Source of the DNA: Bugula neritina
Lineage: Eukaryota; Animalia; Bryozoa
Length of the DNA: 64,000 nucleotides
Assembly: GCA_964035545.1 (NCBI GenBank)
Contig: CAXIUT010000289.1
Coordinates: 62,001 to 126,000, forward strand
Reading direction: 5' to 3'
Positions 4,908 through 55,700 of the stretch are shown in pieces (position 1 is the stretch's first letter; every line of letters begins with the position of its first letter). The notes beneath the pieces were generated by a model. The model searched no databases. It saw only the letters and a list, made by a program, of their open reading frames with translations, and was not told the origin of the DNA. The translations under genes were made by a program, and so were the position numbers.

Positions 4908-7738
4908 ATGCCAAACATAGAAAGTATCCTTTAAAATGCTGCTAATAACTTTATCCTAATCATAGCCATAAATTTGGCTCTGTAATTAACTCTTGTTTTA
5001 TAAATTTTATGGGTTTCACACTTTTAGAAAATTCCAATCAGTGGTTTTTCAGATGGAAAATTTTTTTTTGTAAATTTTGTTCAGATGTGAAAAATATTTT
5101 TAATAACACTTGAAAGCCATGAAATTAAATAATTTGTTTATCAACGTATAAATAATTATTTTTTAATATTCTTTAACTTTAAATGTATTGAAAACTCAAT
5201 GCCTATACTCTGTGTGGTTATTAATTATTGTTGTTTAGTCTTTGATTTTTCAGTAAACCAACTTCATATTTACATTAAGGGGTTTTCAAAGTATAAGACA
5301 GGATTAGAATTCACTGAAGTTATTCCTTAGCAGCTCTTTCCAGAGGAATTATTTAATTTAAAGTTTGCTGCAAAAGATCTAGAGAGAAATGCAAAGAAGT
5401 CTGAAAAATCAGAAAGGGAAGAAAAAGTGAAATTGAAAAAGGTAGGTGTCAAATTGTGCCAGTGTTTATATAGAGGGTCAGCAACCTAATGAAAAGCTGA
5501 ACATCTTGCTACCCTGTTGAACATGAAGCTGGTTGTATATAGAGTGTGAGTAGGGCTGTGGAATTGTCTCACCGTGTACTATCTAGTAGTGAGTACACAA
5601 ATATAGGTCTAGGTTCTGAAATCGTACTTGAGTCGTATCTGTTGGCCAACGATTAGTGGACGGTAGCTGGTTGCAGTGTAGTTATCAGTATAATTAGTGT
5701 GACTTGTGGTGTTAATGTACAATAATTTATATTGGTGCTCAGAACTACCTGCACTGCAGCTGTTATAGTCCTTGCATTTTAGTAATTTTGGCTTACAGCT
5801 CTTTCACTGTGACTAGCACTAACTAATGCTTGGTTGCTGGTTTTTCTGCAAGAAAGTAAAGTGTAGCTGCTTGTTTGTACACAAACTTTTTAATACTAGA
5901 ATATAATAACTATACTGTATCTCCATTTTTATTAATCCTGTTCCTAAAATTAGTTATCTTCTTTTTTCTACTGATAATAGTTTTTTATATAATGAGGAAT
6001 TATTCTGTTATATGATAATTATATTATTTAAATATTAAATAAATCATGAATTGAACGTGTTACTAACTTCTGAAAACAATTGGAAATTTAAAGGAGTTGC
6101 TGATAATACAATCCTGTGCAAGTTAGTAGATTGTGTGTTTCGACCCAATGCTATTTACTTTGAAAAAAAGACAACTCCTACTATTCTTTGGAAAAAAGTT
6201 GCAAAGTTGTCAGTGCAGTTTAGAGTATAGATCTACTTATAATATGTAATAACATAATCAAATTTTTATATATTTATGGCTTCATTTTTGTATCAATAAG
6301 AAATTCAACAGCATTACTTTCGTCACAGGTTAAACTATTGTTGTGAATATCGGTTAGTGTCACTGTGATTACTATATGAATATGTGCTTTCTAATGCATG
6401 AATCTCTCTGTTTCTAGGCGATACAAAAAGGAAACATGGAAGGTGCAAAGATTCACGCAGAAAATGCAATCAGACAAAAGAATCAAGCACTCAACTATCG
6501 ACGAATGAGTGCTCGTATAGATGCTGTCGCTGCCAGAGTTCAGACTGCTGTCACAACTAAACAAGTCACCAAGTCCATGGGAGGAGTAGTGAAGAGCATG
6601 GAGTCAGCAATGAGGTCAATGAACTTGGAACAGGTAGTCAACACTGTCTATTCACAGTGCACCCTCAACTCCCTAATATAACTTCTTCTGTATCCACTCT
6701 CCCCACTATAACCAAATCTGTATCCACACTCCCCCCTATAACTTATTTTGTATCCACTCTCCCCCTATAACCTATTCTGTATTCACTCTCACCACTATAA
6801 CTTATTCTGTATCCACTCTCCCCCCCCCTATAACCTGTTCTGTATCCACTTTCCCCACTACCAACCTATTGTTATAGTGGGATCCTCTATTACATAACTA
6901 TTCACATTTGGCTGCTGTAGTTAATTCCTTGTTGTATTCTGTTGAAACTACCAAAATATGTTTACCTTCATTAACAAAGAGCTGTTTCCTCTAACACCAG
7001 GATGTCTCTAGGAAAGTTGCCATGGTTACTGTAACTATTTCTGATATTGGGAAATCTCTGAATAATTTTCAATGGAAAGAGACTCACTAGAATATTGTGT
7101 AATATGTATGTCTGTGTGTCTCCAACGTGTAACTTTGAGTACTAGTTGCACTATTTCTCACTCAAGTTGGTTGCCAGTATAAAATCATATACACCTTATG
7201 TTTTGTGATTGCGGCACAGGACCTATATGCAAGAGTAATCCCTGCACCTTGATAAATCAACAGTACATTACCAACATCTGTTTCTCTTTGTCACCTACCC
7301 TTAGCTCTTCTGTTCCCTTTAAATATCATAGTAGCCTTAGCTCTTCTGTTTTCTTTAGATATCCCAGCTAATGGACAGGTTTGAGACTCAGTTTGAGAAT
7401 CTGGACGTGCAGAGTCAGGTGATGGAGAACACTATGATGGCCTCCTCCACTCTAACCACTCCCCAGGGAGAGGTTGATGCGCTGATGTCAGAGGCAGCTG
7501 ACGAGGCAGGGTAAGTGTTGGTTTCTTACCTCCTTGTGACAAGAGATTGCTGTCTGTTAGCTAATACTCCACTCACTCAGACTATAATTAAGCTGTGGTT
7601 ATGTTGTCTTTTGGTACTTTTAGTATTGAGCTGAACATGGAGCTGCCTTCAAGTGCTACATCCACAGTCGGGGCGAGCGCTCAGTCCACCGAACAAGATG
7701 AACTATCACAGAGATTACAAAGGCTAAGGAACGTCTAG
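4908..7738 (+). CDS. CHMP1B: Charged multivesicular body protein 1B (ESCRT-III, Did2/Vps46 family), ~198 aa, 5 coding exons
   Basis: Exons 4908-4923, 5344-5441, 6418-6633, 7359-7510, 7624-7738 join in frame: [18 protein letters not shown]...[15 protein letters not shown]...[17 protein letters not shown]...[24 protein letters not shown] and the C-terminal MIM1 motif fit 1B rather than 1A. AATAAA at 8065. Confidence 0.95.
4924..5343 (+). other. U12-type (minor spliceosome) GT-AG intron
   Basis: 5' site GTATCCTTT; branch-like TTCCTTAGC at 5323-5331 close to the 3' CAG; removal restores the CHMP1B frame. Confidence 0.85.
6675..6870. repeat. Intronic minisatellite, ~29-nt unit (ctataacttattctgtatccactctcccc), ~7 copies
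   Basis: Tandem units visible in CHMP1B intron 3. Confidence 0.9.
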
Positions 7739-9343
7739 ACTCACCCTTTCTCTGGGTTTAGTTCTAAATCAGAATCATAACATGCTGTATTTTATATCAT
7801 ATAAAGTTATGCCACACCCTACTGGTTTATTTTATTTAGGATATTATATTTTTATTGTTTGTATAATTATAAGTATATTGTGGTTATGAGTAAATGCGAT
7901 GTATTATGTGGGAAGAAATATTATATTATGTGCTTATAAACCCAGCTATGTTGGGAATACAACTGAATGTTTATTGTTGGTATTTTAATAATATCGTAAA
8001 TAGTATCTACATAATATTAAAACTTGATGTACTGTGATTCAATACTGATGTTATCCAAATTGTCAATAAATGCAAAATAATTCACTCTAATTGAGTCAAA
8101 GGTTCTCTTGCCAAAGAAATTGCTTAGTTTCAGAATCTTTATTCAGAAATACTTCCACCAGATACCACCAGCAGTAACTTATATTAGTAGTCTTTATTTT
8201 CAAACTAAAACCCAAGCAGTGAACCCAATGTTCTTGCGCTGTTCATCAGTGTGGGTTTCCACCTGGTCTTACATAACCATTGTCTAGGCCCTAGGATATA
8301 TGAACCCTGAAATACCAATAGGCAAGCTGTGACTCATTATTTGGTGGTGTATTGTTTTAATGACATTATTATATATAATAATAGTGTGTGAACAAACCCG
8401 TAATCCAAATGTGCATGAACGGTTGTAACATTCATATAAAAAAACACACTGCAGAAACTTGCTTAAATAAACTAATATTTTACTGAAGCCATGTTCCTGT
8501 CTATCTGTTATAAGGGTTTATTGAACTATCCAATCAGCTTTGGCATCCAGCTGGCTAAGTAACTTATAGTCTATTAATCCTTGCCAGCATCATGGTGACA
8601 AAGCAACTTCACATCTATGTTGCAATATGTAAAATATTGTTTTTTTACAAAGCAATGACAATGTAGTATTTTATTGTTTAAATTAATTTGTTATATATTC
8701 CTAACCAAATTGTTTTGCGTGTTCGGCAACACGTAGCACTGAAATTATATAAGCATTAACTATTCAAACTAACGTATAACTCGAACATAATCTGTTGCAA
8801 TGTTAATCTAATATACAAGAGTATCCTGACCTCTAATAACAGCTATAGTGCTATAGGAAACTGATTTATATGTAAGTAACTTAAATTCAAGACTTACAGA
8901 CATGATCTACTTCAACACTGTCAAAATATTCTAAAAAACATAAACTTTAAAAAAGTAGCATTAAGGCATCGATTTTTACAGGCATGTGATTATCAAATGT
9001 ATTTTCCAACGTAAAGGTTTAGAAAATTTACTAGTTGTCACATACATCATACTCTAATATAGATATTAAAGCAGTTTCTAGGCAATGAAAGCCTTCAAAA
9101 ATTATTGAAAGAATGTACAAAAATAAATTTAAAATTCATAACCTAGAGAAACATTGTTAACAAATATTTTGTGCTTACAGCAAGTGGAGTGTAGTTTTTC
9201 ATCAGAAAGTGGGCGCGGCAGTTTGCTTTAACATAGGCTCGAGTTTTACATTTAGCGTGTGCAGCTACGGAATAATACTATAATTACTTGGCTCACAGGC
9301 TCATTATGCCTACGACCGTAGTTACTTTTCCGGGATTTTCTGC

Positions 9344-9401
9344 TCACGTGACCAATCAACCGATCTGGTTGATTGGTTTTGCAATCACACCTGTATTTAA
9401 A
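9344..9401 (+). promoter_or_regulatory. Catalase proximal promoter: E-box, inverted CCAAT pair, C/EBP-like site, TATA-like box
   Basis: TCACGTGAC 9344-9352; ACCAATCAACC-gatct-GGTTGATTGGT 9351-9377; TTGCAAT ~9379; TATTTAAA ~9394; ATG at 9539. Confidence 0.6.
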
Positions 9402-9538
9402 CCGTTGCTGGCTTATGTGCACCCACTATTAATGTAAGCATTGTTGCTACGACTGGCTGCAGATTATCCACTAGAACTTAGTATTTACATAATATTTTTT
9501 TCCAGCGTGCTAAAACTTTTGCCACAATCAATATCATA

Positions 9539-17743
<8,205 letters not shown>

Positions 17744-18206
17744 ATAGGACAAATATTCGGGTTAGTATGATGTAATTACATGTTCTCTTATGGAATCACT
17801 TCCATATCACGGTGGTGGTAGCGCTTTTCCTTGCCTCATCTTCTCATGAATATCACTCTGGTAGACCAGGGAGTTTATTTGCTGCTTAAATAAGCTGGAT
17901 TTTGTAAAACTATTTATAAGCACAGAACTCTTAATGGTCCAGTGAAAAGATGAGACTTTATTGCACTGGTAGTCTGTCTTAACTGGGTTTTAAATATAAT
18001 TATTGAATGTATATTTTTCACTAACAAGTCATAATTGATAGTTGAACGGGGTAATTATTTTGTCAACACTGCGAATGATGGCTTGGCATTTGGAAAGTAA
18101 ATGGTGCTGGGTTTGTGGTATAGCATGAGGCAAACTGTGCATACGTATGCTAACAGTGTTTGTATGCTGTGCATCACTATTTCCACTATTGTATGTGCTG
18201 TTTTAG

Positions 18207-18224
18207 ACAAAGTCTAACATCTGA
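18207..18224 (+). CDS. CAT: Alternative terminal exon of catalase (TKSNI*)
   Basis: gctgttttag|ACA AAG TCT AAC ATC TGA, phase 0 like exon 17729-17743 (TPNL*); AATAAA at 18484. Confidence 0.65.
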   Translation, partial: TKSNI

Positions 18225-18935
18225 GACATGACATTAAAGACTGCAGGCTATGGCCACTGGAGCTTTCCTTACATTCTAAATAATCCAATTCTATTTCATG
18301 TTGGTTATGAAGGGATATAGTCATACCGTTGATTTTATGGTTCTAAATTATTCAAACTTGATTTTATTGTTATGATTGTTAAAAGTATACAAATTAATCA
18401 TGATGAGTTATCATTTATTTACATGGTGACTGCATTTTGCTATGATGCATGATTTTATAGACGAAATTGTTCATAATATATTAAATAAAATACTTCAAAC
18501 TAAAATATATTTACATCACTTTACTATTCATACATCTAACTGTAAAAGTTAACCATAACACGCACTAAACAAAAATTACATGACATAGATTTTGCCCAGC
18601 CACCTGTGTGTAGAGAGCATTAATGTTCATATCAAGAGTTGCCTTTTCTTAGTGTGAAGTGAAGCTGAAGGGAATAAGTAAAGTACGGAGCATCAGGCAT
18701 CTCATATGTAAGTTGGTTACTGCCTTTGCCTGTAGACTACACATTGCTACTGCAAAGTTAATTCTTTGAGACCAGGAGAAGATAACAATTAATTTACTTC
18801 CACTACAAAACTGCCCAATGTTTTAAAATATATTACTTCTGATAGGCTGGAAAATTTTTTATGGTAATTCATTCCATCAGTAATTAATGTTTATGTACAC
18901 ACAGTAAGCTCTAAGCAATGTTCATGTCTGTGACT

Positions 18936-21900
18936 TCAGTCTACATCATCCTCTACTTCACTAACTTCTATGCTATTGATCCGTATAACGGTGAGAAAGT
19001 CTTGTATTACTACAACAGAATATTATTATATGTAACACTAAAGAGTACTACATCCAACACTACAAAGCACTACATGTAATACTACAAAGCACTACATGTA
19101 ACACTACAGAGTACTACACGCAACACGACAGAGTACTACATGTAATATTACAGAGCACAACATGTAACACTACAGAGTACAACAGAATAAGAAGTACTGA
19201 AACTTACATCTCAACTTCTTGACGCCTTTCCTTCTGATGAAGTAGAACCATATTTTTCTGTGACTTAGAGTTTTCTCTACTACTGTTGCTTCTACTCTGA
19301 CATTGCTGCAAATAATTGCACATTATTATATTCTAACCCAAGGTGAATATAATAACTATACACAGCACATATTCTAGTACAATCAAATCAAATACCAATA
19401 TATTCAAGTAGCATTTAGTCTGTTTATAGTAAAGTCCAGGGAGCAGCAATGACTTGAATACAAGGTTAGTGGTTTGAATCCCGGTGTCATTGGTGATGTT
19501 ATAAAAGGCACTCAGATATACTTGCTTGTTTGCAACAATAGAAAACCAATCTAGCTCACATTAAAAATCCTTTCCAATCAGAGGTTCTTACAGGGATGCA
19601 GACTATAAACTCACAGGAGCGTTATTAAATGGAGAGAAAACCTATATATCTGAGAACACATACTTTAAAAGTGGTCGTCCAATCATGGTGAAGTCTTTTC
19701 CTCCAACTAGCAGTACCTTAAACACAAATCAGTGGATGGTTAGAGCCATTGTGGGTGGCCAGATATAGTTTCAGCAATATAGCAATAAGTTGAAGCAAAA
19801 ACACGTTACCTTCTCTATGCATATTCTGTCCCCCACATCTGGAAACCGTCTGTTAGTACGAATGAGTAACAGGTCTTCGGTTGTGACCTTGAACTGATGA
19901 CCCCCGATGTATATCACGGCAAACAACCTCCCGTGTGAATTATGTGATATCTGCTCATTGATTCTGTCTGCCACTCCTGTCACCAGACAACATGTACTTT
20001 AAGGTTCTACAGTCTTAGAAGTGATGACTATACATTAATTATAACTCACTGTGGAGTTGTCTCCCTGAATTCATATAGACTACGAATTCACACGACGTAT
20101 AATACATCCTTATCAAGTAATTTACTTGCATAACATTAACTATTTGACTCGTACTATCAAGTACTCGACAGATAAAACACCTAACCTGTGGGTACAACTT
20201 TGTACTAAGATAACTAAGTCACACTACAACAGCTAGAGCTATGCACGAATTAGCCTCATTGCTTTCAGGTGAACTAAAAAACCTTAAATCTACTAATTAC
20301 AGCCATTAATTATCATCAGAGCTGAGCCTAAGTCAAGTAAGATCAAAGCCAAAATACTAAATCAACTTCAAGTTAAGTATAACAACTACTTGAGTAGACA
20401 GGAATAAGTTTGATATTACTTAAATGAAAGAGATATAAATAGACCATTGAATTGCATGTAAATAATAGTAATGATGAGTAGTTACATACTTCTAGTAAAT
20501 CTAACAGAAAACTAGCCTCAGTTTCCGTTATTCTACAACTAATGTTGATTTATATTTAGTTCAAAGTAATATATTAATAAAATGAGTTGCTGTAATAACA
20601 AGTTAAATCTGCATTAGAGACCATTAGGTCATTGTAAAATAATCAAACTTTTATTCAAAAGTTATTATTTTATGCTGAATATAATTCAGTCCAATCACTC
20701 CAATGCTTGTTTTAATAAATAAAACAGTGAATGAATTCAACTTGTATAACGTTCCATAACTTGCAACAAGTTAATTAGAAATTTAAAGTCACGTGAAGTT
20801 GAGTTAAAGCATCTTAAGTTACAGTGACTCCAAGCTAGCTCTAGCTATTATTAAGGCCCCATACCATGTGTAGAAGGTGTGACAATATGAGAGCTAGATT
20901 CTTCTAGACTCAAACTGTTGACAACAGATGTTGAGTTGTGACGATTACTGGGGATTCTTCTTTGAAAATTCGCTGCAGTAGTTGAGAAAGAACTTTTTTC
21001 TAAGTCTACAGAAAATTAAAAATATAAATTTAATAGGACGTTGTTAGATGAGAGTTTTCCTGCATCATTTAAACTAAGTAATAACTACAGATGACTTCTA
21101 TAATACACAAGAGTTCAACAAAAATTAAGTAGTAGTACAGCTAATAGTAATCATACCATACAATTGAAGTAAACACTTTTAGTTTGTTAGTTGCAAGTTC
21201 TGTAATCAGCAAATCACTAAAATTCAATGTCAGCACTAATCGATGTAACTTACAAATTCACTTACTTAGTTCTGTAAGTTAAATGACTGTGCAACTGAAA
21301 TTACAACCGCCCAAATCCAATAAAATTCAATTATCAATATGAATATGAATATGCATCAGATCAGTAAAACTAAAAGTAAAATTTAAGGAAAGTATTTACT
21401 ATTAGTATTAGTATTATTATTACTATTAGTATTAGTATTACCAATAGTATTACTATTAGGGCCTACTAAGTATTAATTTAAATTACATTTACAATTAGTG
21501 AATTAATATAGCAATTGTATAGTAAATATAATTATAATATTTACCGCTTATAACTATTCATTGATAGTAATATTACTAGTAATGGTAGTAGTACCGCTTA
21601 CACTACCTGTATTCAGTACTGTACTAGTACTACTAATTCTAATTCAGTAATTGTAATACAGTAATACTAATACTAGTTGAGTACTAGTAATACTATTACT
21701 ATCACTATCAGTATTAATATTACTCTAATTATTACCAACTACTGTTACATTTAGCTTTACTGATTAGTTATTACGTTTAACACATCAGTTATTACCGAAA
21801 GTGAATGATATTGATTAACAGTCACACTCGCAGTGATTACTGATCTCATTCAAATTGAAATTGCAAATTAAAATCAGAATGAAAATGTTACGCTAAACTA

Positions 21901-22065
21901 AAGTTACCATCTACATTTTACATTTAAATTTTGGTATTCACAGTTAAAACAACACATACGGGTTATAGAAGGCAGTTGCATTGCTTTGGCAGCATCTTTT
22001 GACCAAAAACTATAGTTAAAAGCAGTCCGAGAGCAAAATCTCTTTAATGATCGTAAACATGCCAT
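18936..22065 (-). CDS. MRPL21: Mitochondrial ribosomal protein bL21m, ~212 aa, 6 exons
   Basis: Exons 22065-21960, 21005-20865, 19976-19810, 19716-19664, 19305-19208, 19009-18936. Motifs RLFAVIYIGGHQFKVTTEDLL, EKVLLVGGKDFTMIGRPLL, VRVEATVVEKT, TVIRINSIE; Arg/Ser-rich presequence-like N-terminus. Confidence 0.93.
19030..19190. repeat. ~22-nt intronic tandem repeat (tactacatgtaacactacagag), ~7 copies
   Basis: Fills most of the last MRPL21 intron. Confidence 0.85.
19438..19612 (+). mobile_element. Degenerate copy of the tRNA-derived SINE seen at 49513
   Basis: B-box-like ggtttgaatccc, cattggtgatgtt core and ggttcttacagggat...gactataaact tail shared with 49513-49712. Confidence 0.55.
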
Positions 22066-22256
22066 TTTTTTCCGGAAATGTAAATATAAATCTCAAAGTT
22101 GGCTGCTGTTATATAAACAAATATTATAATAACTTTTGTTAACAAAACATGACTCAGACTTAATTTCAATTTTTAAAACTATTTTAAACATGCTTTTGAC
22201 AAACAATTATAAAGTAGTTCATCAAAAGACTTTTTTGACAAGAGTTACTTTTCAAG
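22066..22256. promoter_or_regulatory. Bidirectional promoter between MRPL21 and CSTF2
   Basis: Divergent ATGs only 191 bp apart; ETS-like CCGGAAAT at ~22072, AP-1-like TGACTCA at ~22150. Confidence 0.75.
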
Positions 22257-25200
22257 ATGTCAGCCCCCTATATTGACCGAGAAAAGCAGCTAAGATCGGT
22301 TTTTGGTAATTATCTAGCTATTGTATTTCTGTCACTATCAGTCTATGGTTTTCTATAAAGTCAGCAGTACGACTTTTGCTAAACTGTTATTTTGATGACG
22401 TTTTATGTTTGTAATTTCATTTTAATAAAGTAGTATATATTGGAAGCGGAGGATCATTATCGTACACTTAACAGTTAACACTAACAGTAACAGTAACTGT
22501 AAGTGTAACAGCAACACTAACTTACTCTAACAGTAACAGTTATTGTAACACTAACAGTAACTCTGGGTCAGTTTCACTTAGTAAGTGTGACTTGGTTTTA
22601 CAGATACTGTTACACTTACTATTAGTATTACTATTAGTGCTTCTAGTTCTACAAAACTCGTAGTAGTACTTGTCAGTGAAGATGCCGTTGTCGTTGAGCT
22701 TAATGACTATGAGTGTGAGTTAGAGTAAGTCTAACAGTAACAGTAAGTGTAACACGGCCCATGACCAGTAGCATTATCATGATCTGCCATAATTATGAGG
22801 ATCACTACATGTACTCGCTATGACTATGACTAGTACTACGCCTACTGAGTACTGACACTTGCCCATTTTAATTGCATAAAAAAGTCGTAATGTTAATAAT
22901 AATAATATCTTTAGATATCTTTGAAGTTTGAAGTTCAACATATCGAGCACACTGGGACACTCAAGATCTAAGACTTATTAGATATTGTGATTATGATTGT
23001 CATTAATTTAGATGATTGGTTATACTGATATGGTTATAGTCTACAGGAGTGCCTCATTTGGTCTAACTTTACATTGTGAAATTCATTTGACTACAGCCAC
23101 AGGTTAAGCAGATGTTAATGATTTGAATTTTTTAATCTTTATTCTTTCTGGTGTTTTTTAGTCTAGTAATTGTGACTATAATTTTAGTTGGCAATATCCC
23201 GTTTGATGTTACGGAGAGTGAGCTTCGTGATAAGTTTGAACAAGCTGGTCCTATTGTTAGCTTCAGGTACGTGAGATCTTGTGATTTATCTCAGTCACTA
23301 GGTGATGTTTAGAGCTCTACTCAGACCCTGTGTGCATTGGTTTTGTGGGTAAGTTTGCATTCTGCTGGGATGTTAGTGGAAATAAGCCTCATTTTTTATA
23401 TTATTTTGCATTATATGTGTTCATTATATGCTAGTGATAGTAATCATTAAGGGTTAGATTTACATAATGTGGTACTACATGTAACTGACTTGAAGCCAAA
23501 GAGAACCGGCTATTAATAGCTGTAAATTACGACCATTATATCATAATGCCTTCTGCTATTAAGTTAACAATATTTTGATGACTCATCAAACACAGAAAAA
23601 TGATTCAATCTTGTTTTAATTGTAAATATGAGTCGCTCTTTGTTGATAGGTTCGTTTTAGTTTAAAGTTGTTCATGTAAGTTAATCTGGTCACCTATTAT
23701 AGATCAGTTGCTGTTATAGATTAGTCCATGATCGTGAAAGTGGTAAACCCAAAGGTTATGGATTTATTGAGTACCAGGATGTAGCGACGGCCAACAGCTG
23801 TGTACGGAATCTCAACAATGTGGAGTACAATGGCCGACCTCTAAGGGTCGGGCCCGCTGCCGGGGGCGACCAGAATAACGAAAATATTAAAGCCCTTCAG
23901 CAAGCTTTAGGAGGCCTACAACAGGAGTCTCCTTATGGGGACCCTGTTGATCCTACTGATGCACCTGAGGCTATATCTAAAGTAGGCCACTCCGCATTAC
24001 AATATTACAGTAGTTACTGTTACTAGAGTATACGGTATACTGAGTAGTTACTGTTACTAGAGTATACAGTATACGGAGTAGTTACTGTTACTAAAGTATG
24101 CAGTATACTGAGTAGTTACTGTTACTAGAGTATGCAGTATACTGAGTAGTTACTGTTACTAGAGTATACAGTATACTGAATAGTTACTGTTACTAGAGTG
24201 TATAGTATACTGAGTAGTTACTGTTACTAGAGTATACAGTATACTGAGTAGTTACTGTTACTAGAGTGTATAGTATACTGAGTAGTTACTAGTTTACTGA
24301 TTGGCTGTTGAGTTTAAGGTTGATTTTGATAGGCTGTCTCTAGTCTGCCCCCAGAGCAGATGTTTGAGCTGATGAAACAGATGAAGCTGTGTATACAGAA
24401 TAACCCCAATGAGGCTAGGAACATGTTACTACAGAATCCCCAGTTGGCATATGCACTGCTTCAGGCTCAGATTGTCATGAAGATAGTTGACCCTCAAGTA
24501 GCTATGGTAAGCAACTGTTAATAGTGCAACTGTTGATAGTGTAGCTGTTGCTAGTGTAGCTGTTGATAGTTTAACTGTTGCTAGTGTTGCTGTTGATAGT
24601 GTAGCTGTTGATAGTGTAGCTGTTGATAATGTAACTGTTGATAGTGTAAGTGTTGATGGTGTAACTGTTGATAATGTAACTTGGTTTAGGCGCTGCTGCA
24701 CAGGGAAAGGGATGCAGCGCCTGCTTTAAAAACTGACGACCCCCCTAAACCTGTCATACCCACCCCTGCTGTGAGCAGACCAGGTGGAGGGGGACTCCTA
24801 GGGGAACATCCCGGGGATCACACCCCTGCCCCCTCTAACAGACCACCTGGATTATTAGACAGGTTAGTTTTGTCATTTAGCTTTGGTATTGATCGCTATT
24901 ATCAGCTCTGCATACCATTATCTTTCTATGGAATAAGTTCCTATGGAAATTCTCTTTTGCTCAACTTCTATTTTGTGTTTTACTCCTACTTTATAGCCAC
25001 GAGCCTGCCATGACCCACCAGTCTGATAGGTGGTCCGGCGGCTCTGGGGGGTCCGATCCACGCGGTCCTTCCAATATGTCCCGTAATATTGACCCTCGGG
25101 GGCCTCCAGTTGAGCTAGACTATAGAAGAGGTGGGCCCGGTCTGGACCCTAGAACTGGTCCAGGAATGGACCCTAGAGCCGGGCCTGGAATGGACCCTAG

Positions 25201-26569
25201 AAGTCGACCTGGTATGGACCCGAGAGGTGGACCTGGAATGGATCCTCGTGGTGGGCCCGGAATGCGAGGCGGGCCAGGAATGGACCATAGAAGTGGCCCA
25301 GGAATAGACCCCCGCGGTGGCCCAGGCATGGATTCCCGTGGTGGTCCCGGAGTTGACCCAAGAGGTAAGGGCACACCATCGAGTGTTAATACTGACTGAG
25401 GGTTAGTAGTGACTAAGTGTTAGTAGTGACTGACTAAGTGTTAGTAGTGACTGACTGAGTGTTAGTAGTGACTGACTGAGTGTTAGTATTCACTTAGTGT
25501 TAGTACTGACTGAGTGTTAGTATTCACTGAGTGTTAGTATTTACTGAGTGTTAGTATTCACTACTATTGGAACATCTCATAGTGGAATTACTTTTGATGA
25601 CACCATTACATTGCCTCTTTTAGACAGACGTGATGTGGACTACCGAGGAATAGATCGAGATTACCGGAGAGATCCCCGTGATTCACGACCTCCTCCAGGT
25701 CACTGCATAGTATTTACTCTAGTCAGCTGAAAACATTAGTGTTAATATCATTCTCTGTGTCGTCGCGCTCTATCAAAGCTGATTAGATTATACTTCTGTG
25801 ATTCCTTTATTTTGTTTGTGAGACTCTTTTAACCAATTTCCTTGAGTTATTCAAATAAGGAATCAAACTTTTGTTTTGGTCTCATGTATGGCACCATTTC
25901 CTTCACTAGCTCGTTTTTGCACTTTACGTTGTTTCTGTGCTATTTGTTGTTTCTATGCTCTATGTTGTTTTGTGTTTCAGGCGGCCTATTAGATCACCCC
26001 AGGGACGACATGAGGTCATCAATGGGTGCTTCCGCCAGACCTGGACCACCCGGTAGTTCGCAATTTTCTCCGAGACTTGGTGGAGCTCCCGGGAGAGCCG
26101 CACCAGCATCAGCTGTAAGTTACATTATGCCAGCTGGCTGGTGGCTGACAGACCCCGCACTGTTCACGAGTCAGTTTGCTCTATTCACGAGCTGTAACCG
26201 CCTGCTTGTACTATTCACCAGCTGTAACAGTCTGCTTGTACTATTCACCAGCTGTAACCGCCTGCTTGTACTATTCACCAGCTGTAACAGTCTGCTTGTA
26301 CTATTCACCAGCTGTAACGGTCTGCTTGTACTATTCACCAGCTGTAACCGTCTGCTTGTACTATTCACCAGCTGTAACCGTCTGCTTGTACTATTCACCA
26401 GCTGTAACTGTCAGTTTGCTCTCTGCAGGGTTCCAGTGATGAGGATAAAGAGAAAGCAGCTCTCATAATGCAAGTACTTCAGCTCACAGATGAACAGATA
26501 CAGCAGTTGCCACACGACCAGCGCCAGAGTATCCTCATACTCAAGCAGCAGATAGCTGGGGGACGCTGA
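22257..26569 (+). CDS. CSTF2: Cleavage stimulation factor 64-kDa subunit (CstF-64), ~484 aa, 9 exons
   Basis: Exons 22257-22305, 23188-23266, 23720-23981, 24333-24506, 24690-24862, 24997-25364, 25624-25698, 25981-26114, 26429-26569. RRM (RSVFVGNIPF...DRESGKPKGYGFIEY), hinge (SLPPEQMFELMKQMKLCIQNNPNEARNMLLQNPQLAYALLQAQ), C-terminal domain (EKAALIMQVLQLTDEQI...QRQSILILKQQI). AATAAA at 26661. Confidence 0.96.
24009..24291. repeat. 34-nt intronic minisatellite (gagtagttactgttactagagtatacagtatact), ~8 copies
   Basis: CSTF2 intron 3. Confidence 0.95.
24512..24681. repeat. 15-nt minisatellite (gtgtagctgttgata) filling almost the whole intron
   Basis: CSTF2 intron 4 (24507-24689). Confidence 0.93.
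25381..25563. repeat. ~17-21-nt minisatellite (gagtgttagtagtgactgact)
   Basis: CSTF2 intron 6. Confidence 0.9.
26180..26410. repeat. 30-nt minisatellite (ctattcaccagctgtaaccgtctgcttgta), ~8 copies
   Basis: CSTF2 intron 8; contains cagct-gtaac resembling the upstream donor cagct|gtaagt. Confidence 0.95.
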
Positions 26570-27470
26570 TAGAACCCCTACTCTGCTGATTAGACTTGTA
26601 GTTCACAGGCTGCTAGTTGATGGAATGTTTCTGTGTTGTCATATACTGTACATAAAGTGTAATAAACAAAGCATTGATAGTTCTTTCTCTGTATTTCCTC
26701 TCTCAGTTGTCTTAGCTGATAATAAATTTTTTATTTTAATCCTAAAACACTTTATTTGTACTCCTCAGCTTGCATCCCCTTCAAGCCACTCTACCAGTGT
26801 ATTGCTGCATTATGTAATGTTTCACAGTTGCTGCTGTTGAACATACCTAACGTATTATACCAAGTTTTAGCTATATCCATGGGTACAGTTGTTTTGTTAC
26901 ACTCTTGGTGGCATACCTGTATAATAACTGAAGTTTGAGTAAAGTTACCTGTTAAACCTTATGCTAAGAGATCTGAGAGTGGGCTGTATGTTGCACCCCT
27001 CATCATGTTGGTAACATAGCCTGAGGGCTCACCATAGCAGAAGACACCATAAACAAACACTTTGTTCCACTTCACCAATAAACTTGATGTTTGAAAAACT
27101 GAGCATGTGTGCTCTTTACCATATTGATATAGGTAAACGCAAATATAAACTTTAATCTTTGCTCCCATTTGAAGGTTGCAACATGGATACATCTATTGAT
27201 ATGAAACTGTTATCTGCTCTCAGTTTGATACTTGAAGATTATATCGCATGTAGCTTGCAGTGGGATAAACTCTAACATTGCTTTAGTGATGCACTCACAC
27301 TGATTACAACATCTTCAGCTGTGATTTCTATGAGCTGCTGTTGGTATTCCTTCAGCTAGAAGCCGTTGCTATCAGCTTCTGATCTTATGTTAGCATACAG
27401 GCAATAGACTGAGCTCCAACCCAGTACTAGATCTTCACATTTGAAAGAAGGAGATTCGCAACCGACAGAT

Positions 27471-30439
<2,969 letters not shown>

Positions 30440-32023
30440 CAAACTTGTAATTTGTTGCAACTTTTTACACCGATATACATATCTCATCATTCACTTCACT
30501 TGACTAAAGTGTTATGTACCCAATACGGGTTTTGTGCATGAATTCATCTTTCAACAGAGATTTGAAAATCAATCATGAGTTTTTTGTCATACCATCAACT
30601 ATAATGTAAATATTTTAATTTATAATTGAACATTCAAATTAAAATAACATATTATTATAGTCAAAATAATTCAAACTACATTTTTGTCTTAATTTTACAA
30701 AAATAGATTCCTTCAAAAATACATTGACAGCGTCATTATTTGCTTGTACATTATACCCATTGAGTCTATGTTTAACTCTAGGTGTTGAACTTATGCATAA
30801 ATTAAAAACAATTTTGAGGTAATAACTCTCCAAAAACTTACAAATAAGCTTTTTGTTGATTGTGTCATCAAAATTTAAGAAGATTTTTGTTGTTGTTCAT
30901 AGAATACATACATGTTGATATCTTATTTTTCATTATGAGACTGTGCAGTTTTTTTCTTTAAACAAGATGTTATTAGTCAGCCTAATCATCAAACATTATT
31001 GATTTGCAAAACTGCTACTTGTTACAGTGTATACGCTGTAGATACTTTGCAACCTCAAGCTTTTAGTCACATTATTTGGCTTGAGCTCTAAAATTTTGAA
31101 AATGTGCATTTTACAAAGAGCTAGTTACACCAAACAATTGCACTACAACTTACAGCATAGCATACGATGTAACAAAATTGGGTGTACACTAATTTGCAGC
31201 ATTTTGGACAGTAAGTGACTAAACATACTATCTTTGTGCCATACCTATTTATACAATTTACAACTTTGCTGGAGGCAGGTATAGCATATGCAACTCCTGA
31301 GCCATATAATAATGTGTAGGCTGTTTTTATTTTAAAGCTTACTAATAGAAAGACATTTTGAACTATGCAATGTGAGGTTAGCAGTTTTGTTGTCATTTTT
31401 CACAACAATCCAAGTTATTGAAAGTAACAGAAACAAAACTGCATGGTATGGCATGTCAACAGGACTTCAAGGCTCTGTAATCAATATTCTCCACTTTAAA
31501 GTATCTACAATTAACAAAAGTTATGCAATAATTAAAAGAAAACTATAGAACATAACAAACTGTAGAGAATTTTAGTTCATGTACATTGGAAAGGCAACTC
31601 TCACCCCAATACTCTATTACCCTGGCGTGCATCAAAGGTGATGCACTCAGCCTGATACAGCATGTATGTTACGCTACTGACGTTCAGGACAAAGGAATAG
31701 GATAAGTAAGCCAATCATTATGTTTTTAGCTTGACTAACTTGCACCAATCATCTGGGGCCGCTGTAATAAACACGGTTTACATTTTTTGTTATATAAGGT
31801 TTTATGGACTAGCGCAGAAAATTTCCATATCTAAATATTTTTAGCTACTTCTTTGGTGTGCTGCATAAAGTTCTACTTTAAACACATTTCCTAAAAAACT
31901 GGTATCATAACTTTAAAATATTTAGAAATGTAATTTATTGTAAGCAAACTGTTGTGAAAGTTTCAAAAGATTTTAAGCATTTTTCATTTTTCATTTGTGA
32001 TTGCAGTCCTAATAGGTACTTAT

Positions 32024-32779
<756 letters not shown>

Positions 32780-37689: not shown

Positions 37690-38009
37690 TTATTTCTTAT
37701 ATGTCAATCAAAATAATGTAGTTTGGCATTCCTATAGCTATGTATTGTTTCATATTTATTTTTCAAATCACTTCGACAAAGTGATTAAAGTTTGATATAT
37801 CATTTTGTGCTTTTTTAAATTAGGTGCCTCTGGAATCAGTACAGCAACAGGAGCTATCTAACAATTTAATACTACAGCAAAGTCAGCAGCTGGAATAGCA
37901 GGAGTTGCTGGAATCACAGCTGGTTCTATGGGAAGTGCTTGGTTAATGTCAAAAGCAGCAGATAAGTGTAAATATCTCATAGGAGTTGATGACAGAGGTT
38001 ATATGCTAG

Positions 38010-39811
38010 ACGACCATAGCAAGTGGTAGCTGTCGACCTGGTCTGACCCATGCCCCCAACTCCCAGAGGCAACAGCTGGATCCTGGTATTAACCGACCAC
38101 TTCACGAGGTGGGCTGACGCTCTAGCTATCCCAGACACGTCGGCTCCGACAGTGGCCAGGATGTTGGATCAACATGTATTCTGTTATTTCGGCCTTCGGG
38201 AACAGATACATTCAGACCAAGGCACTTAATTCTAGTCTCAACTGATGAGCAACCTCTGCCGTCTCTCGGGAGTAAATCAGAGCACGACCACCCCCTACCA
38301 TTCACAAGGTAACGGGGTGGTGGAGCGCAACAACCGGATTCTAGGTGATGCGCTCCGGAGTCTGCTCCTAGGGCGTAGTCAGGAGGAATGGATACAGTAC
38401 TGCCGCAGGTCATGCGCGCTTACCGCAGCACACCACGCACCAGCACTGGTGAGACCCCAATCTTTTATTGCTCGGTCGAGAGGCTCGGGTCCCCGAATAC
38501 CTTACCTACCATGTTCCTGAGCAAGACAGCTCGGTCCACGAGTACGCCAGTGAACTGGTAGAGCGGATGAAGGCCACGCACAAAATGCTGCGAGAGAAGA
38601 AGTGACAGGTGCGGCGTGAAGATTCCGATGAGTCACCCTTCTATCAAGCTGGAGACTGGGTGTGGATGGTCAATCACCGTAGGCGTCGCGGACAGGCGGC
38701 TAAGTTAGAGCCTAAGTTCGTGGGGCCGTACGTAGTAGTCGAGGCGATGCCCAACCATACCTACAAGATTGAGCGCTCAGGACAGGTGTCTATCCAAAAT
38801 GAGGCTCGCTTTAAGTCGTATTGGGTTAGCCCCGACGCGGTGGAAAAAGGCCCGCCTCCCTGTTGTTGGAGCCCCAGGGGCAGACAACAACGCGTGGGCG
38901 GCAGCGGCGTGGACCCGAGTATGAGGAGGTCATGCCGCGGGAGGAAGACCTGGCAAAAGACGAGCAACCACTTTTGCCGGGAGAAGTGCGTCCGCTGCCT
39001 CTAGCGCCAGGCCTGGCACCATCACTTCCGGAACCCGAGCCCGGAAGGGCAAACCCCCACGGAGGGAGGGGCTCCATCTGGAGAAATCAGAGAAGAGCCA
39101 GTCACTAACAGGCCGGAAGCCCCGCCAGTGGAGCTTGATAGTCCACCGGTGAGTGCACCATCCTCTCTAGAACAAGGACAGCGTACTAGACAACCCCCAG
39201 CCTACTTAAAAGACTTCATATGTGACTGCATTCAAAGCGGCAAATATGTAAGTGCAGCGGGGTGCCGTACGAACAAACTATCGGTGAAGAGAAGGTTCCG
39301 TGCCCGTCAAGCTAAGCATCGGTCCCAAACACAATAACAATAATCTTTACAGAGGTGAGGAATTATCTATGAGTCATGTCCTTCCTGGAAATTCTCTGTG
39401 GACAACGTTGTGGTCATTTAGATGACGTTGTCCCATCTTCTTATATAAGTTGCTGACGCATCCGATAGTACTTTTCTCTCTACATCTGACCTTGTATTTT
39501 TTTGATTATTTCTTGTTATTGCTGTTCTTATATGGGTAATGTAATATGTGTTTCTTCTTTTTCTATTATATTATTATATGAATGTTATTACCAGAAAATA
39601 GGCTTTCTGCTGGTGGGGGCGGTGTGGTGGCTCACTGAATTACTCTTATAATAGAAAAGGGGAGCGTTGTTATTCCCCTTCTAAGTAGACTGTTAGATCA
39701 TTGCGTACACGAGGAAATGGCCTGATTGTGACGAACCCTCCAATAAAAATACACTTGGACTATATTATCGAGGACAGTGGTTTCCCGCGCAGTTGTTAGT
39801 AGTGTCGAACA
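38010..39811 (+). mobile_element. Decayed 3' part of a Gypsy/Ty3 LTR retrotransposon (integrase, PPT, partial 3' LTR)
   Basis: Frameshifted integrase: VAVDLV..PRGNSWILVLTDHFTRWADALAIPD, QIHSDQG, TTPYHSQGNGVVERNNR, KLEPKFVGPY (GPY/F), RTRQPPAYLKDF. Purine tract gggggcgg then TGTGG at 39623, AATAAA ~39742. Right boundary uncertain. Confidence 0.85.
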
Positions 39812-48400: not shown

Positions 48401-49910
48401 TTGATGTTAATTGGCTGCCTTTTTTTATTTATTTTAGTGAATCAAATTTACAATTTGAATGAAAAGACTTCTATGAAAAATTATAAGAAAAAAAGTGCCG
48501 TAACTCGAACTGCAGCGGCTACTAATACTGAGACATCTACTAAGAGTACTGCTACTCCTACTATCACTCCTACTTCTACTTCTACTCCTACTGTCACCAC
48601 TACTCCTACTATTACTGCTACTCTTACTATTACTACTACTCCTACTGTCACTACTATGACAGCTACTACTACTCCTTCTATAGAAAGGACAACTTTTATA
48701 AATACATGTTCAGCTCCTTTGATTAGACCACCCACAGAGAAGTGTTCAGTTACACCGAGACCTTCTACAGCCTCAACCACAACTTCAACTAACAGACATG
48801 TTGTTCACGCTACACGCTCCACTCACATCTACGCTGCTATTACCACAACACTGACTAACACTTCAACCACTGCTTCTTATACTTCAGCCACATCACAGCT
48901 CCCAGTTTCAAGAAATAATCTATTAGCAACAAAAGGTAAGATTTAAATAAATAGAATTCTTGGGAAAGAGTTTTCTTTGATATTTTCTGGTAATTTTAGA
49001 AAAGTTGAGAATAATAACTGAAACAGTTCAACAGTGTTGTGAGTGGCAGCTAAGCATTGTACTACTGTTTGATTGTAAAAACAAGTCAGGATATTTCTAC
49101 AACTTTTACGGATATGATTAAGCCATTGTCATAGTTGCCACCTTATATTATGTTGCTTTGACTTCAGGTAACAAAAGAAAGCTGTGGGCTATAGAAAAGA
49201 TTAATAGAGTCAGAGGAGCTATGGCACTTGTGAAATGGAAAGGTTACAAGTAAGTTGTGTAGACAACTCTACAGTTATTTTCTGTCCACTGTGTGTGCTG
49301 CAGGTGCTTCGGTTGTAAGGATATGGTTGTGTTTTCAGAATTCCAACGTGGGAACCAGTGAGAAATGTGAAGCACACAGTTTTCTACCAGCAGCTGATGG
49401 TAAGAGCACAGCACAGCTGTTGATGTTATTCATTGTTATTTAGTAAATGCTATGAAATGGAGTTGAGTTGAACCCGAATTTAGTTTTATAACTGCATAAG
49501 ATATATTCAATGAGGGAGCTGTCTAGGGGGTAGAGCGTTTGCCTAGTAAACACGAGGTCATGGGTTCGAACCCTGACAAAGGCCATTGGTAATGTTAAGA
49601 AGAGCATCCAGTCATAATTGCTCCTGTATCTCATTTAAATAAGTCCTTAGCCCTCTTTAATAAAAACTATTTCCATCGGGGGTTTCTCACAGGGATAGTG
49701 ACTATAAACTTGCATAAGTTGTATAAGATATATTCAATATAGATAAATAGATATATTTTCTATTTATGTTATTTGTTCATCTTTTATAAATTATAATAAA
49801 GCAAAAGGTAAAGTCTACTTTTTATGTGGTAAAAGTAAACCAATCAAATGTCATATTTTATTGTGTTTTAGAAAGAAGATAGAAGTTTTGAACAGCCATC
49901 AACAACTTAG
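45482..49910 (+). CDS. Uncharacterised protein: N-terminal CxxC zinc ribbons, Thr/Pro-rich linker, C-terminal chromodomain (~375-388 aa, 8 exons)
   Basis: Exons 45482-45590, 45870 (or 45909)-45977, 46209-46327, 47797-47947, 48438-48935, 49168-49249, 49339-49399, 49872-49910; all seven junctions are GT-AG and in phase. CTLC..CSNC, CPHC..CPGC; LWAIEKINRVRGAMALVKWKGYKIPTWEPVRNV. Confidence 0.8.
46385..47460 (-). mobile_element. Decayed RTE-clade non-LTR retrotransposon fragment (APE endonuclease and linker)
   Basis: Broken frames read AGDLNEHAG...GRRNDDREKIL...DLALANTFFAK, CKVISDEPMTLQHKLL, WWWNEEV, YEDLYKDL...YRLARARQR. Lies in intron 3 of the chromodomain gene. Confidence 0.8.
49513..49712 (+). 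mobile_element. tRNA-derived SINE (tRNA-Thr(AGT)-like head)
   Basis: A-box-like tagggggtagagcg, anticodon arm ttgcct-AGT-aaacac, B-box ggttcgaaccc, then a core and tail repeated at 19438 and 27920. No proper acceptor stem, so not a functional tRNA. Confidence 0.75.
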
Positions 49911-52742: not shown

Positions 52743-55700
52743 TGTAACAATGTGGATTTCGTGTAAAGGGAGAGTAAAAGTTTATTCTGCACTGCTTGCA
52801 CTCGCTATAACAACTGACTGCTTTACAATCAAGCACATAATAATATTGCACTCAAAACCATGACTAATAAAATAAGTACATTAACTTTTCACACATAATT
52901 GGTAAAACAGATGTGGACACTTAGCCAGGATACAACAACCCTTTCTTTCTTGAAAAAGCTTTAATACTAGCATAATAAAAATTTATAACAATTCAACAAA
53001 CTTCAGGTAAACCAAAAACATAATAACATAAAATTAATACTGAAATAAACTAAGTAAAGCCAAATTACAGTGAACCTTGAAAAGCTATAGTTTACATAAA
53101 ATGCATAATATCAAACTAAAGCAACTAAACTAAGTACAGTGAGCAGTGTGAAATGAGCTGAGGGCAAACCTGCAATGAAGGACACACAGAGCCACCACCG
53201 AATCCCACAGCCACAACACACAGCCCCAGCAAGACACGCCAACCAACTACTAGCAAGTATCAGACTGGTCCAGATTACACAAGTCTCGAACCAACACAAA
53301 CACTAAGTAAACCAGTCAAGTCACCCTGTAAATTGCAATATGAACTCTACAAACTAATGAGACTAACAACTAATAAACTAATCTACCAAGCAATAAAGAA
53401 TTTAATGAGTCACTGTGACCCCATATCTATCAGGAGGTTTCCTGTTTCTCAAAGGCCTATCAGTAACAGCAATAGCCTGACTCGAAGTTGGAGTCAGTGG
53501 CTTGACATCCGACACATTTCTGCGTTTCTCAACACCTTCTTTAGACTGGACTACGACCTCTGACCCTTGTTTGCTAACAACCTGTTGAGACTCCGGATTA
53601 TATGTTGCACTGAGCTTGTCAGTTTTATTCTGACGAATCAAGACTTCATCTCCTACACTGACATCGGGTATATGAGCCTGATTACTTAAGTAACTCTTAC
53701 TCTTCTCCTGTGCAACTGCTTGGCGGTCTCGTACCTCTTCATCTAGTCTGTTTGACTTCTCTAAGCAAGGAAGCTTCGTTTGGAGTTTTCTCCCCAACAT
53801 GAGTTCTGCAGGAGAAACACCAGTAACAGAGTGTGGTGTTGAACGATAACTTAGCAGAAATTTTCTCAACTCAGTTTTATGGTCTTTGCCTGAAATGTGA
53901 GCTATCTTGAGTGCTTTCAATAGGCTCCTATTTTGTCTCTCCACTTCACCATTGGCAGCCGGCCACATTGGTGTGGTGGACATCCAGAATACACCATACT
54001 CATTTAGAAATTCCTGAAATGATTGACTAACAAACTGTGGTCCATTGTCAGTTCTAATACTTGATGGAACTCCCCATCTACAGAACATAGCTTCAATAGC
54101 TTCAACTATTTTTGTAGCAACTGTTGACCTCAGAAATGCTACCTCAAAATAACGACTGTAATAGTCAACCACTACGAGAATACTCTCTCCATTGGGTAAT
54201 GGACCCAGTAAATCACAAGCAATGTGTTCCCATGGCTTGTCTGGCATTTTTGTACTGGACATGGGTGGTGGTCTGCTCGGTGCACTGACAAGCTGGCACT
54301 CATAGCAACCTTTACAAAACCTCTCTACGTCCTGATCCATGCCTGGCCACCACAATTTTGTACGCAACAACTGTTTTGTCTTACTTGTACCCTGGTGACC
54401 CTCATGAGCCAACTCCACTGCTACTGACCTTAATGACACAGGCATTACAATCCTATTGCCCCTCATGACTACTCCTTCAACTTCAGCTAGTTCAGTCATG
54501 ACAGCTTTATATGCAGGAAGGCAGTTTGACCATAGGCCACTGATTAGTGACTTTCTAACCTGGCCCATCTCCAAACATTTAGCAGCAGCCTTTTTAATTT
54601 CATTAAAACTCATTGCCTTGGGCACTGACAGTTTAGCTATCATCATTACATACTCATCAGCAACATTATTCACATTATAAGGGGTATGCTCATCAACTGA
54701 CAAACGAGACAGTGGGTCAGCTATGTTCATTGACCCCGGCTTGTAGACCACCTCATAGTCAAATGCTTGTAGCCTAAGCACCCAGCGTTCAATCCTAGCT
54801 GATGGTTTTGAGTTTACACGATTGAAAATAAATTCCAACGGTTTATGATCAGTCACTAACCTAAACTTAGTTCTAATCAAGTATATGGCAAAGTGTTCAC
54901 AGCCCCATACTATAGCTAAAGCTTCCCTCTCAGTCTGAGAGTATCTGCGCTCCACGGCTGACAAACTGCGATGCCCATATGCAACAACTCTCTCACAACC
55001 ACCAACACGTTGACTTAGAACAGCACCTAAACCATACGGACTAGCATCAACTGTAACAGTTGTCTCAGCATTTGGGTTGAAATAAGCTAGTGTTTTGCTC
55101 TGAGCCATCATAGATTTGATTTTATCAAAGGCAGCTTGCTGCTCACTAGACCACTGAAACTTACTTGCTTTCTTTACTAACCTCAGCAGAGGCTCAGCAT
55201 GTGTAGATAAATTAGGAATGAATTTACCCACAAAGTTCACAAGACCTAGGAAACTACAAAGCTCTGTAACATCCTTTGGGACCCTAGCTTGTACAATTGC
55301 TTTGACTTTCTTGTCACTTACTGATATACCTTTGTCTGAAATATCATAGCCTACATAAGTGATCTTGCTACAGCCAAATTTGCACTTTTCAGCATTTAAT
55401 GTCAACCCTAGTTTACTCATGCGCTTGAGAAATGCTCTAAGCCTAGCATCGTGCTCTTGTTTGTTACTGCCATATATAACAATATCATCAGCATAATTTT
55501 GGCAACCCTCCAAATCTGCTATAGATCTCTGTATGTGATACTGATAAACTTCACTAGCAGATGCTACCCCAAAATTAAGCTTCTTATATCTGAATACCCC
55601 AAATGGTGTGGCAAATGTTGTAATAGCCCTAGAGGCTTCATCAAGTTCTAACTGATGGTAACCAAGTTTTAAATCTGCTTTGCTAAAAACTTTAGCACCA

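Follow-up and report, generated by a model that had tools for sequence, protein, structure and literature searches.

Minisatellites in the introns of a five-gene block of Bugula neritina, some of which repeat a splice junction

Why are the introns of one short run of genes filled with tandem repeats, and why do some of these repeats copy the splice site beside them? The question is raised by a 64,000-nucleotide (nt) stretch of the bryozoan Bugula neritina (hereafter the window; positions 62,001 to 126,000 of contig CAXIUT010000289.1, or C298:62001-126000), part of a 216 Mb assembly with nine chromosome-scale scaffolds. Between 5.3 and 30.5 kb the window holds five tightly packed genes, identified from conserved reading frames: CHMP1, catalase, MRPL21, CstF-64 and a secreted multi-Kunitz gene. 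A preliminary description of this DNA had listed at least 14 arrays over the five genes, with units that differ from array to array, and had suggested that a lineage-specific, gene-body-focused duplication process may lengthen introns and multiply splice signals. The reading we consider probable is instead neutral birth and turnover, in place, of variable-number tandem repeats (VNTRs) in a minisatellite-prone genome, with exons filtered by selection and with junction-copying arrays, or 'mirages', arising at the rate given by geometry.

Arrays were called with Tandem Repeats Finder (TRF) over the whole window, and those with a period of at least 10 entered the census. Exon and intron structures came from conserved reading frames, with junctions set to GT..AG, and for catalase from spliced transcript contigs. 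TRF recovered every array of the preliminary description at its coordinates and brought the total to 19, found in 17 of the 29 introns of the five genes and covering 24% of their 14.55 kb. The units are 12–43 nt long, each different, and present in 2.7–25 copies, with 80–100% matches for most arrays. As head-to-tail copies of a 10–100 bp unit the arrays are minisatellites, and higher-order periods of 59, 66, 90 and 129 bp occur among them. Single introns can consist largely of repeat, the highest shares being those of CstF-64 intron 4 (92%), CstF-64 intron 3 (80%) and the last MRPL21 intron (75%). The earlier statement that arrays halt at or before the exon edge held in that all 19 are intronic; it failed in one detail, since the last partial copy of the array at 15114–15380 extends 8 nt into the exon.

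Each unit was scored against all 46 junctions of the five genes. For the arrays at 15114–15380, 16597–16875, 27540–27711, 15599–15655 (acceptor) and 26181–26412 (donor), the best-scoring match was the array's own junction. The first three of these contain the working junction, with a unit that spans the exon-intron boundary, and it is such arrays that we call mirages; here the junction copying claimed earlier, at two acceptors and one donor, was borne out. At 15114–15380, a 28-bp unit repeated 9.5 times in catalase ahead of an exon starting at 15373, the unit consists of the last 20 intron bases, ending in AG, and the first 8 exon bases. The unit further includes a branch-point-like CTRAT, ~22 nt upstream of the AG that follows, and with CTRAT and AG together each copy would be a self-contained branch-site-plus-acceptor module. 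The second catalase array (16597–16875; 19 bp, 15.1 copies; exon starting at 16875) has a unit that ends in TTTAG or TTTAA and carries the acceptor AG plus 1 nt. On the donor side, the Kunitz array at 27540–27711 (21 bp, 8.2 copies; exon ending at 27543) has a unit of 4 exon bases, GTGAGT and 11 more bases, built on the junction CAG|GTGAGT. Seven of its eight units carry the CAG|GTGAGT donor (CAGGTGAGT), and the remaining one reads CAGATGAGT.

The other cases are weaker. The 26181–26412 unit, described earlier as donor-like, shares only the 9-mer CAGCTGTAA with its donor, which lies 64 nt upstream, and the match is roughly borderline after multiple testing; its derivation from that donor is suggestive, not proven. 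The 15599–15655 unit, absent from the earlier list, resembles its own acceptor region. The remaining arrays had no convincing likeness to any of the 46 junctions, with 24513–24681 a borderline case, and 14–16 of the 19 are not of the mirage type. Two single duplications had also been proposed. That in CHMP1 (7300–7362, plus strand, previously given as ~7301–7363) is clear, a two-copy acceptor duplication with a ~37-nt period in which ~24 of 26 bases agree and AG is replaced by AA in the upstream copy; that at ~12615–12650 is marginal. Mirages are not peculiar to the window, since a further donor-type example was met in a genome sample of 18 loci described below (L018:3654-3762, minus strand; G000:C4 ~3.0037 Mb). 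The exon end and donor there read ...CATTGAG|GTAATGAGT, and behind them stand five degenerate copies of a unit made from these bases.

Are arrays drawn to splice sites? We collapsed each array to one unit and placed its founding segment with equal chance anywhere in the intron or across either of its junctions. Under this model 3.9 of 19 founders are expected to span a junction, and 3–5 are observed, so no special link to splice sites is seen and no splice-site-directed process is needed. A null in which whole arrays are placed uniformly in present-day introns (0.39 expected, 3 seen, P = 0.004) was set aside as the wrong null for a question of origin. As junction-spanning duplications are not visibly depleted, extra identical splice sites are tolerated. 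The signature of intron gain by tandem duplication of AGGT, the Rogers model, was absent: cognate and non-cognate comparisons gave 4.7 vs. 4.5 and 3.3 vs. 3.7 matches of 14 positions (P = 0.22 and 0.90), and the intron positions are also common to relatives. Compared with non-repeat DNA, the units themselves have more AGTAT/TACTA and fewer A-runs. They show no convincing sense-strand bias for branch-point-like or splice motifs or dinucleotides, and no shared core motif beyond compositional bias; a TATCA core is mildly enriched (11 vs. 5.8 ± 2.3), and there is a weak excess of units with palindromes of at least 8 nt (14 vs. 8.2 ± 2.7).

The preliminary description was right that some arrays multiply splice signals, yet the major catalase mRNA takes the exon-nearest site. 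Assembled RNA contigs from four public runs were aligned to positions 12000–17999, and spliced catalase transcripts were present in two runs from different studies (X7 and X10). The contigs place junctions at 12233|12640, 12690|14447, 15564|15662, 15814|16174, 16346|16875, 16992|17285 and 17443|17729, with loose contig ends at 16346/16875 in both runs. An apparent non-canonical joint at 14617|15364 (CA..TA) was rejected as a 9-nt alignment slip, as the final 9 bases of the exon are similar to those of the intron and a literal reading puts a TAG stop in frame; the true junction, 14626|15373, restores the conserved His-Ile-Lys-Thr-Asp-Gln-Gly. With junctions defined by transcripts, each of the eight catalase arrays falls in an intron. 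Of the repeated acceptors (15373 and 16875), the contigs of X7 and X10 use the last copy, nearest the exon, in both cases, so that at contig level the main catalase mRNA is normal at these two mirages. If each 28-nt copy has both a branch site and an acceptor, it must be the exon context that singles out the last copy, as we infer.

Copy number was also compared between haplotypes, as the preliminary description had proposed. The C298 stretch is an alternative haplotype (haplotig) of scaffold C3 near 18.45 Mb (approximately G000:C3:18452188-18512400); the two are collinear and 2–6% divergent, with many indels. Array lengths were compared by anchoring unique flanks in both, and TRF was also run on C3. 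The arrays lie at the same places in the two haplotypes, with flanks 96–100% identical, and for 14 of the 19 intronic arrays the lengths are unequal, the difference in several being a whole number of units (−7.0, +4.0, −6.0, −2.0 and +3.0), as expected of VNTRs. Nearly every array differs, including those outside genes. Run X7 supplies a further length allele in catalase intron D, in which the 13469–13866 array is without 167 nt. The one coding repeat recorded for contrast, a 24/90-bp repeat in a CstF-64 exon (25127–25359, plus strand) encoding Gly-Pro-Gly-Met-Asp-Pro-Arg-like repeats and likely the counterpart of the vertebrate CstF-64 repeat region, has equal length in both.

Array by array, all on the plus strand except those in MRPL21, the picture is as follows. 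In CHMP1, 6.3 copies of a 30-bp unit (6669–6860) begin 35 nt past the donor of the intron at ~6634–7358 and have equal length in C3. In catalase, the intron at 12234–12639 holds a 19-bp array (12299–12580; 14.8 copies, 27.9 in C3), and the intron at 12691–14446 holds a 17-bp array (12850–13253; 23.8 copies, 11.8 in C3) and a 16-bp array (13469–13866; 25.4 copies, 27.3 in C3). The acceptor mirage at 15114–15380 is reduced to 2.5 copies in C3, and that at 16597–16875 is extended to 33.9. The 16-bp array at 15599–15655 (3.6 copies, 7.6 in C3) makes up most of the 97-nt intron at 15565–15661. Of the last two catalase arrays, a 19-bp array of 3.1 copies (17193–17251; intron 16993–17284) is the same in both haplotypes, and a 19/43-bp array (17465–17561; last intron, 17444–17728) spans 470 nt in C3. 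MRPL21, on the minus strand, has seven copies of a 22-bp unit (19030–19184) filling most of its last intron (~19001–19207), and in intron 1 two low-complexity arrays of the (TAGTAA/TACTAT)n type (21391–21459 and 21626–21693) whose unit family recurs elsewhere. The two CstF-64 introns with the highest shares contain a 34-bp array (24009–24290 in intron 23982–24332; 8.3 copies, 10.0 in C3) and a 15-bp array of 11.3 copies (24513–24681 in intron 24507–24689; one unit longer in C3). The same gene has ten copies of a 17-bp unit (25381–25562; intron 25365–25623), an 18-bp repeat of the pyrimidine tract (25928–25974; 2.7 copies) lying 6 nt ahead of the acceptor at 25980, and the 30-bp donor-like array (26181–26412; 7.7 copies, 1.7 in C3) in its last intron, 26115–26428. 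In the Kunitz gene, the donor mirage has 6.2 copies in C3, and a 12-bp array of 7.8 copies (29148–29242; intron 28825–29315) is three units longer there, with 10.8.

Are the arrays as old as the introns that carry them? Three mirage or donor-like units (those at 15114, 26181 and 27540) were searched in the 216 Mb assembly and found only at the two alleles of their own locus, apart from two chance near-matches to the 27540–27711 unit. Among 74 arrays, the low-complexity (TAGTAA/TACTAT)n family alone is shared between loci. This (TAN)n-like hexamer/18-mer family (TACTAT, TATTAG, AGTATT, TAACAG) is seen at 1238–1292, 9605–9681, 21391–21459, 21626–21693, 22469–22561 and 48547–48656, and in sampled loci L014 and L019. 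As relatives we took contigs whose exons are 74–82% identical in nucleotides and as much as 86% in protein; for catalase exon f the closest relative (86% protein identity) comes from European Nucleotide Archive host-associated metagenome scaffolds (L032-L034), one of them labelled BRYA16-1. In these relatives the positions of catalase intron E and CstF-64 introns 2–4 are conserved, with lengths of 114–550 nt, and no array was found in the orthologous introns of the short-read contigs, which break at repeats. Clean absences are the introns that a contig bridges in full, which for catalase E means one species and for CstF-64 introns 3 and 2 two species each. On this comparison the introns are old and the arrays recent. 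The suggestion that the arrays are lineage-specific is thus upheld by private units and by their absence from relatives, and the suggestion that they lengthen introns is not, as the relatives' orthologous introns are as long or longer without them.

These observations can be accommodated by a simple course of events. Each array would be born in place by tandem duplication of a local stretch of 12–34 nt and would then grow or shrink by replication slippage or unequal exchange. The genome would be prone to minisatellites everywhere, and purifying selection would clear them from coding exons; given such selection and the tight packing of the genes, with only ~3 kb of intergenic DNA within the block, the surviving arrays would be almost all intronic. 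A founding duplication that happened to span an exon-intron junction would yield an array with splice-site copies. Such decoys would be tolerated if the spliceosome, with help from exon definition and probably from the decay of mis-spliced RNA, takes the copy nearest the exon. The slippage or unequal-exchange mechanism, the neutrality and the way in which decoys are ignored are what we infer here; the arrays with their place in introns, the choice of the exon-nearest acceptor, the allelic differences in copy number, the confinement of the three tested units to their loci and the lack of arrays in relatives are observed.

How minisatellite-prone is the genome as a whole? We sampled 18 stretches of 10 kb (180 kb), two per scaffold for the nine scaffolds, at 3 Mb and 9 Mb, and treated them as random. 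They hold 2.3 arrays per 10 kb, with 5.5% coverage and over-dispersed counts between loci. The five-gene block holds 7.5 per 10 kb (14.5% coverage) and the gene-poor second half of the window 2.7 per 10 kb (3.8%), and the arrays of the gene-poor half are equally polymorphic. With so low a genome average, the block has to be locally hot. The sampled loci were also scanned with a crude exon finder based on codon bias and trained on the window. Arrays were enriched ~1.5-fold near exon-like islands in this crude test, and about half of the sampled arrays lay more than 600 bp from any island.

Several of these results weigh against a uniform neutral process. The introns of the block have 13 arrays per 10 kb and, at 24%, far higher coverage than the sample (5.5%) or the adjacent gene-free 15 kb (~6%), a local density 3–4 times above a uniform neutral model that may be due in part to the choice of a striking window. 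Sampled arrays are also somewhat nearer to exon-like islands than chance would place them: 17 have islands on both sides vs. 10.7 by random placement (P ~0.01) at a lenient threshold, the difference losing significance at stricter thresholds in the 180 kb sample. CstF-64 intron 4 without its array would be 29 nt, in our judgement probably too short for a working intron, which argues that the arrays were not simply added to old introns. Finally, acceptor use is known at the level of assembled contigs, so that minor use of decoys is possible, and the RNA evidence covers catalase, the Kunitz donor array being read from the frame. Compared with its surroundings, the block has a real enrichment in introns, which is unproven as a genome-wide rule. 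We regard as possible, though rather doubtful, that minisatellites arise and turn over in this lineage at a heritably raised rate and are thereby overwriting its introns.

The strongest competitor is the process originally proposed, one specific to the lineage and to transcribed gene bodies (e.g. transcription-associated repair or R-loop-linked slippage) that duplicates sequence in introns, lengthening them and multiplying splice signals. The excess of arrays in the block introns and the island-flanked arrays of the sample both speak for it, and a bias of this kind exists in nature, as tandem-repeat density in green algae peaks in introns near junctions (PMC3887541). Nevertheless, we think it unlikely. 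About half of the sampled arrays are remote from islands, the arrays of the gene-poor half are equally polymorphic, the genome average is too low for all introns to match the block, junction-derived units are not enriched, and the motifs of the units have no sense-strand bias. The evidence in its favour, moreover, comes from a window picked for its striking look and from a crude exon finder. With 5.5% coverage in the sample and ~1.5-fold enrichment near islands, a gene-body focus was not sustained.

Could the arrays instead be functional, with repeated sites or motifs tuning splicing or expression? One candidate is the Kunitz donor array. Within 27471–27725 it follows the signal-peptide exon, and its 21-nt period keeps the frame open as Ser-Gly-Glu-Leu-Leu-Pro-Val repeats with a consensus donor in nearly every unit; a later donor, if used, would add seven residues per unit after the signal peptide, and any of the intact donors would yield an in-frame variant whose mature N-terminus is lengthened by heptads. 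No Kunitz protein derived from a transcript came up in a protein-word search, and a marine-metagenome contig with a 73%-similar 21-bp repeat that came up in the Kunitz search was unrelated, a chance match. Two mirage arrays are predicted to fold as RNA more stably than shuffled sequences (z = −4.4 and −3.5), folding that could help to hide the decoy sites, and an intronic minisatellite has been linked to splicing decisions in Caenorhabditis elegans (PMC4039745). Against a function, copy number differs freely between haplotypes, the arrays are absent from relatives and no two units are alike. Use of the 28-nt or 19-nt acceptor decoys would put the frame out of register, and two of three frames are open by chance in a unit such as that of the Kunitz array. 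We therefore hold a functional role to be improbable.

Tandem repeats are error-prone in assembly, and the copy numbers differ between two assembled haplotypes, as they might if an assembler had collapsed or inflated them; but both haplotypes have arrays at the same places between near-identical flanks, contigs assembled from short reads in runs X1 and X3 reach into the arrays from either flank, and the exact-unit differences together with the further allele in X7 rule out an artefact, an explanation we find scarcely credible. Hardly more credence is due to an origin as internal repeats of mobile elements or as introner-like insertions, which active transposable elements here might suggest, as the tested units are locus-unique in 216 Mb rather than present at many loci, the arrays are unrelated to each other, no terminal repeats or target-site duplications flank them, and the intron positions are conserved in relatives. 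One such element does interrupt an intron of the block: a 689-bp insertion in catalase intron H of the C3 haplotype alone, opposite window position ~16559 (G000:C3:18468779-18469467), has CCCTT...AAGGG inverted ends and a TTAT target duplication, and looks like a small non-autonomous DNA transposon, polymorphic in this individual. Neutral turnover of locally born VNTRs accordingly remains the reading we favour.

The setting of the block is that of AT-rich animal DNA, with a GC content of ~35% overall and ~50% in exons. CHMP1, catalase (11.0–17.75 kb), CstF-64 (ATG at 22258, stop at 26566) and the Kunitz gene (ATG at 27471) are on the plus strand and MRPL21 (~18.9–22.1 kb) on the minus strand, all placed from reading frames and catalase also from spliced transcript contigs. 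MRPL21 and CstF-64 stand head to head with starts ~165 bp apart (22092–22258) and probably share a bidirectional promoter in the gap. Genes are few and transposable elements many in the second half of the window, with a GC-rich retrotransposon integrase fragment at 38–39 kb (37860–39400) and an open pol-like frame of 1340 amino acids at 53405–57424 (minus strand); a (TA)n microsatellite of ~373 repeats lies at 32021–32776. Elsewhere in the assembly, more than 100 intronless protein-kinase matches (PF00069) on small contigs (e.g. C206, C190, C72, C66) read through TAA/TAG, so that the assembly includes, along with the animal host, many contigs from an organism that uses a ciliate-type genetic code. 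Sampling of introns guided by PF00069 was swamped by these contigs and of no use for host introns. On scaffold C4, more than 30 fibronectin type III exon matches lie on one strand over 42 kb (G000:C4:7108115-7150546), probably a giant titin/twitchin-like or receptor gene.

What do these arrays add? Minisatellites that repeat exon-intron boundaries were already known in amphioxus (PMC3087553, PMC3902484) and in intervening sequence 7 (IVS7) of human F7 (PMC1557585), so the phenomenon itself is not new; the arrays described here are a further example of a known, mirage-type oddity. They extend mirages beyond amphioxus, at a frequency that needs no special mechanism. Identical splice sites beside the real one are a natural test of site choice by the spliceosome, and the several-fold differences in decoy number between one animal's two chromosome copies (9.5 vs. 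2.5 and 7.7 vs. 1.7) form a natural allelic series, in which allele-specific RNA sequencing could measure the cost of decoys directly. A minisatellite load as high as ~5% of sampled DNA has consequences for how this species is assembled and annotated and for the design of markers. If the raised turnover should prove true genome-wide and stronger in transcribed DNA, it would point to a lineage-specific change in lagging-strand or repair processing.

The closest parallel is amphioxus. The term mirage was coined for Adh3, where somatic length instability was also reported, according to the account of Canestro et al. (2002) relayed in PMC3087553. Further examples are the globins BflGb6/9, troponin C and PGBD5, with normal splicing and haplotypes that differ in length (PMC3087553, PMC3902484). 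The arrays of B. neritina share with them tandem organisation within genes, a unit that includes the splice junction, occurrence on donor and acceptor sides, an undisturbed main mRNA, copy-number differences between haplotypes, many other intronic minisatellites and a highly heterozygous marine invertebrate as host. The amphioxus globin mirages have units of ~150 nt with sizeable parts of exons, whereas the units here are 19–28 nt with 1–8 exon bases. The genomes differ as well: Branchiostoma has ~0.4–0.5 Gb on 19 chromosomes, and the animal studied here a 216 Mb assembly with nine chromosome-scale scaffolds.

For the donor array the nearest counterpart is F7 IVS7, a 37-bp VNTR whose first element spans the exon 7/IVS7 boundary and in which experiments found the most upstream donor in use and the pseudo-donors silent (PMC1557585). 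The Kunitz array has the same layout, a donor followed by identical pseudo-donors in a polymorphic minisatellite, the first element of which crosses the boundary; it differs in having a period in frame (21 nt). Chlamydomonas and Volvox likewise have their highest tandem-repeat density in introns, more so near intron-exon junctions, in a survey that was genome-wide, annotated, concerned with plants and algae, and silent on junction-copying units (PMC3887541); in B. neritina the intron enrichment applies to one gene block only. Human minisatellites have a GC-rich core, in contrast to the AT-rich, AGTAT/TACTA-enriched and A-run-poor units of B. neritina. In other respects these arrays resemble generic VNTRs, with 10–100 bp units head to tail, higher-order periods and length polymorphism by gain and loss of units, and what also sets them apart is how much DNA they occupy, a very high 5.5% of that sampled and as much as 92% of a single intron.

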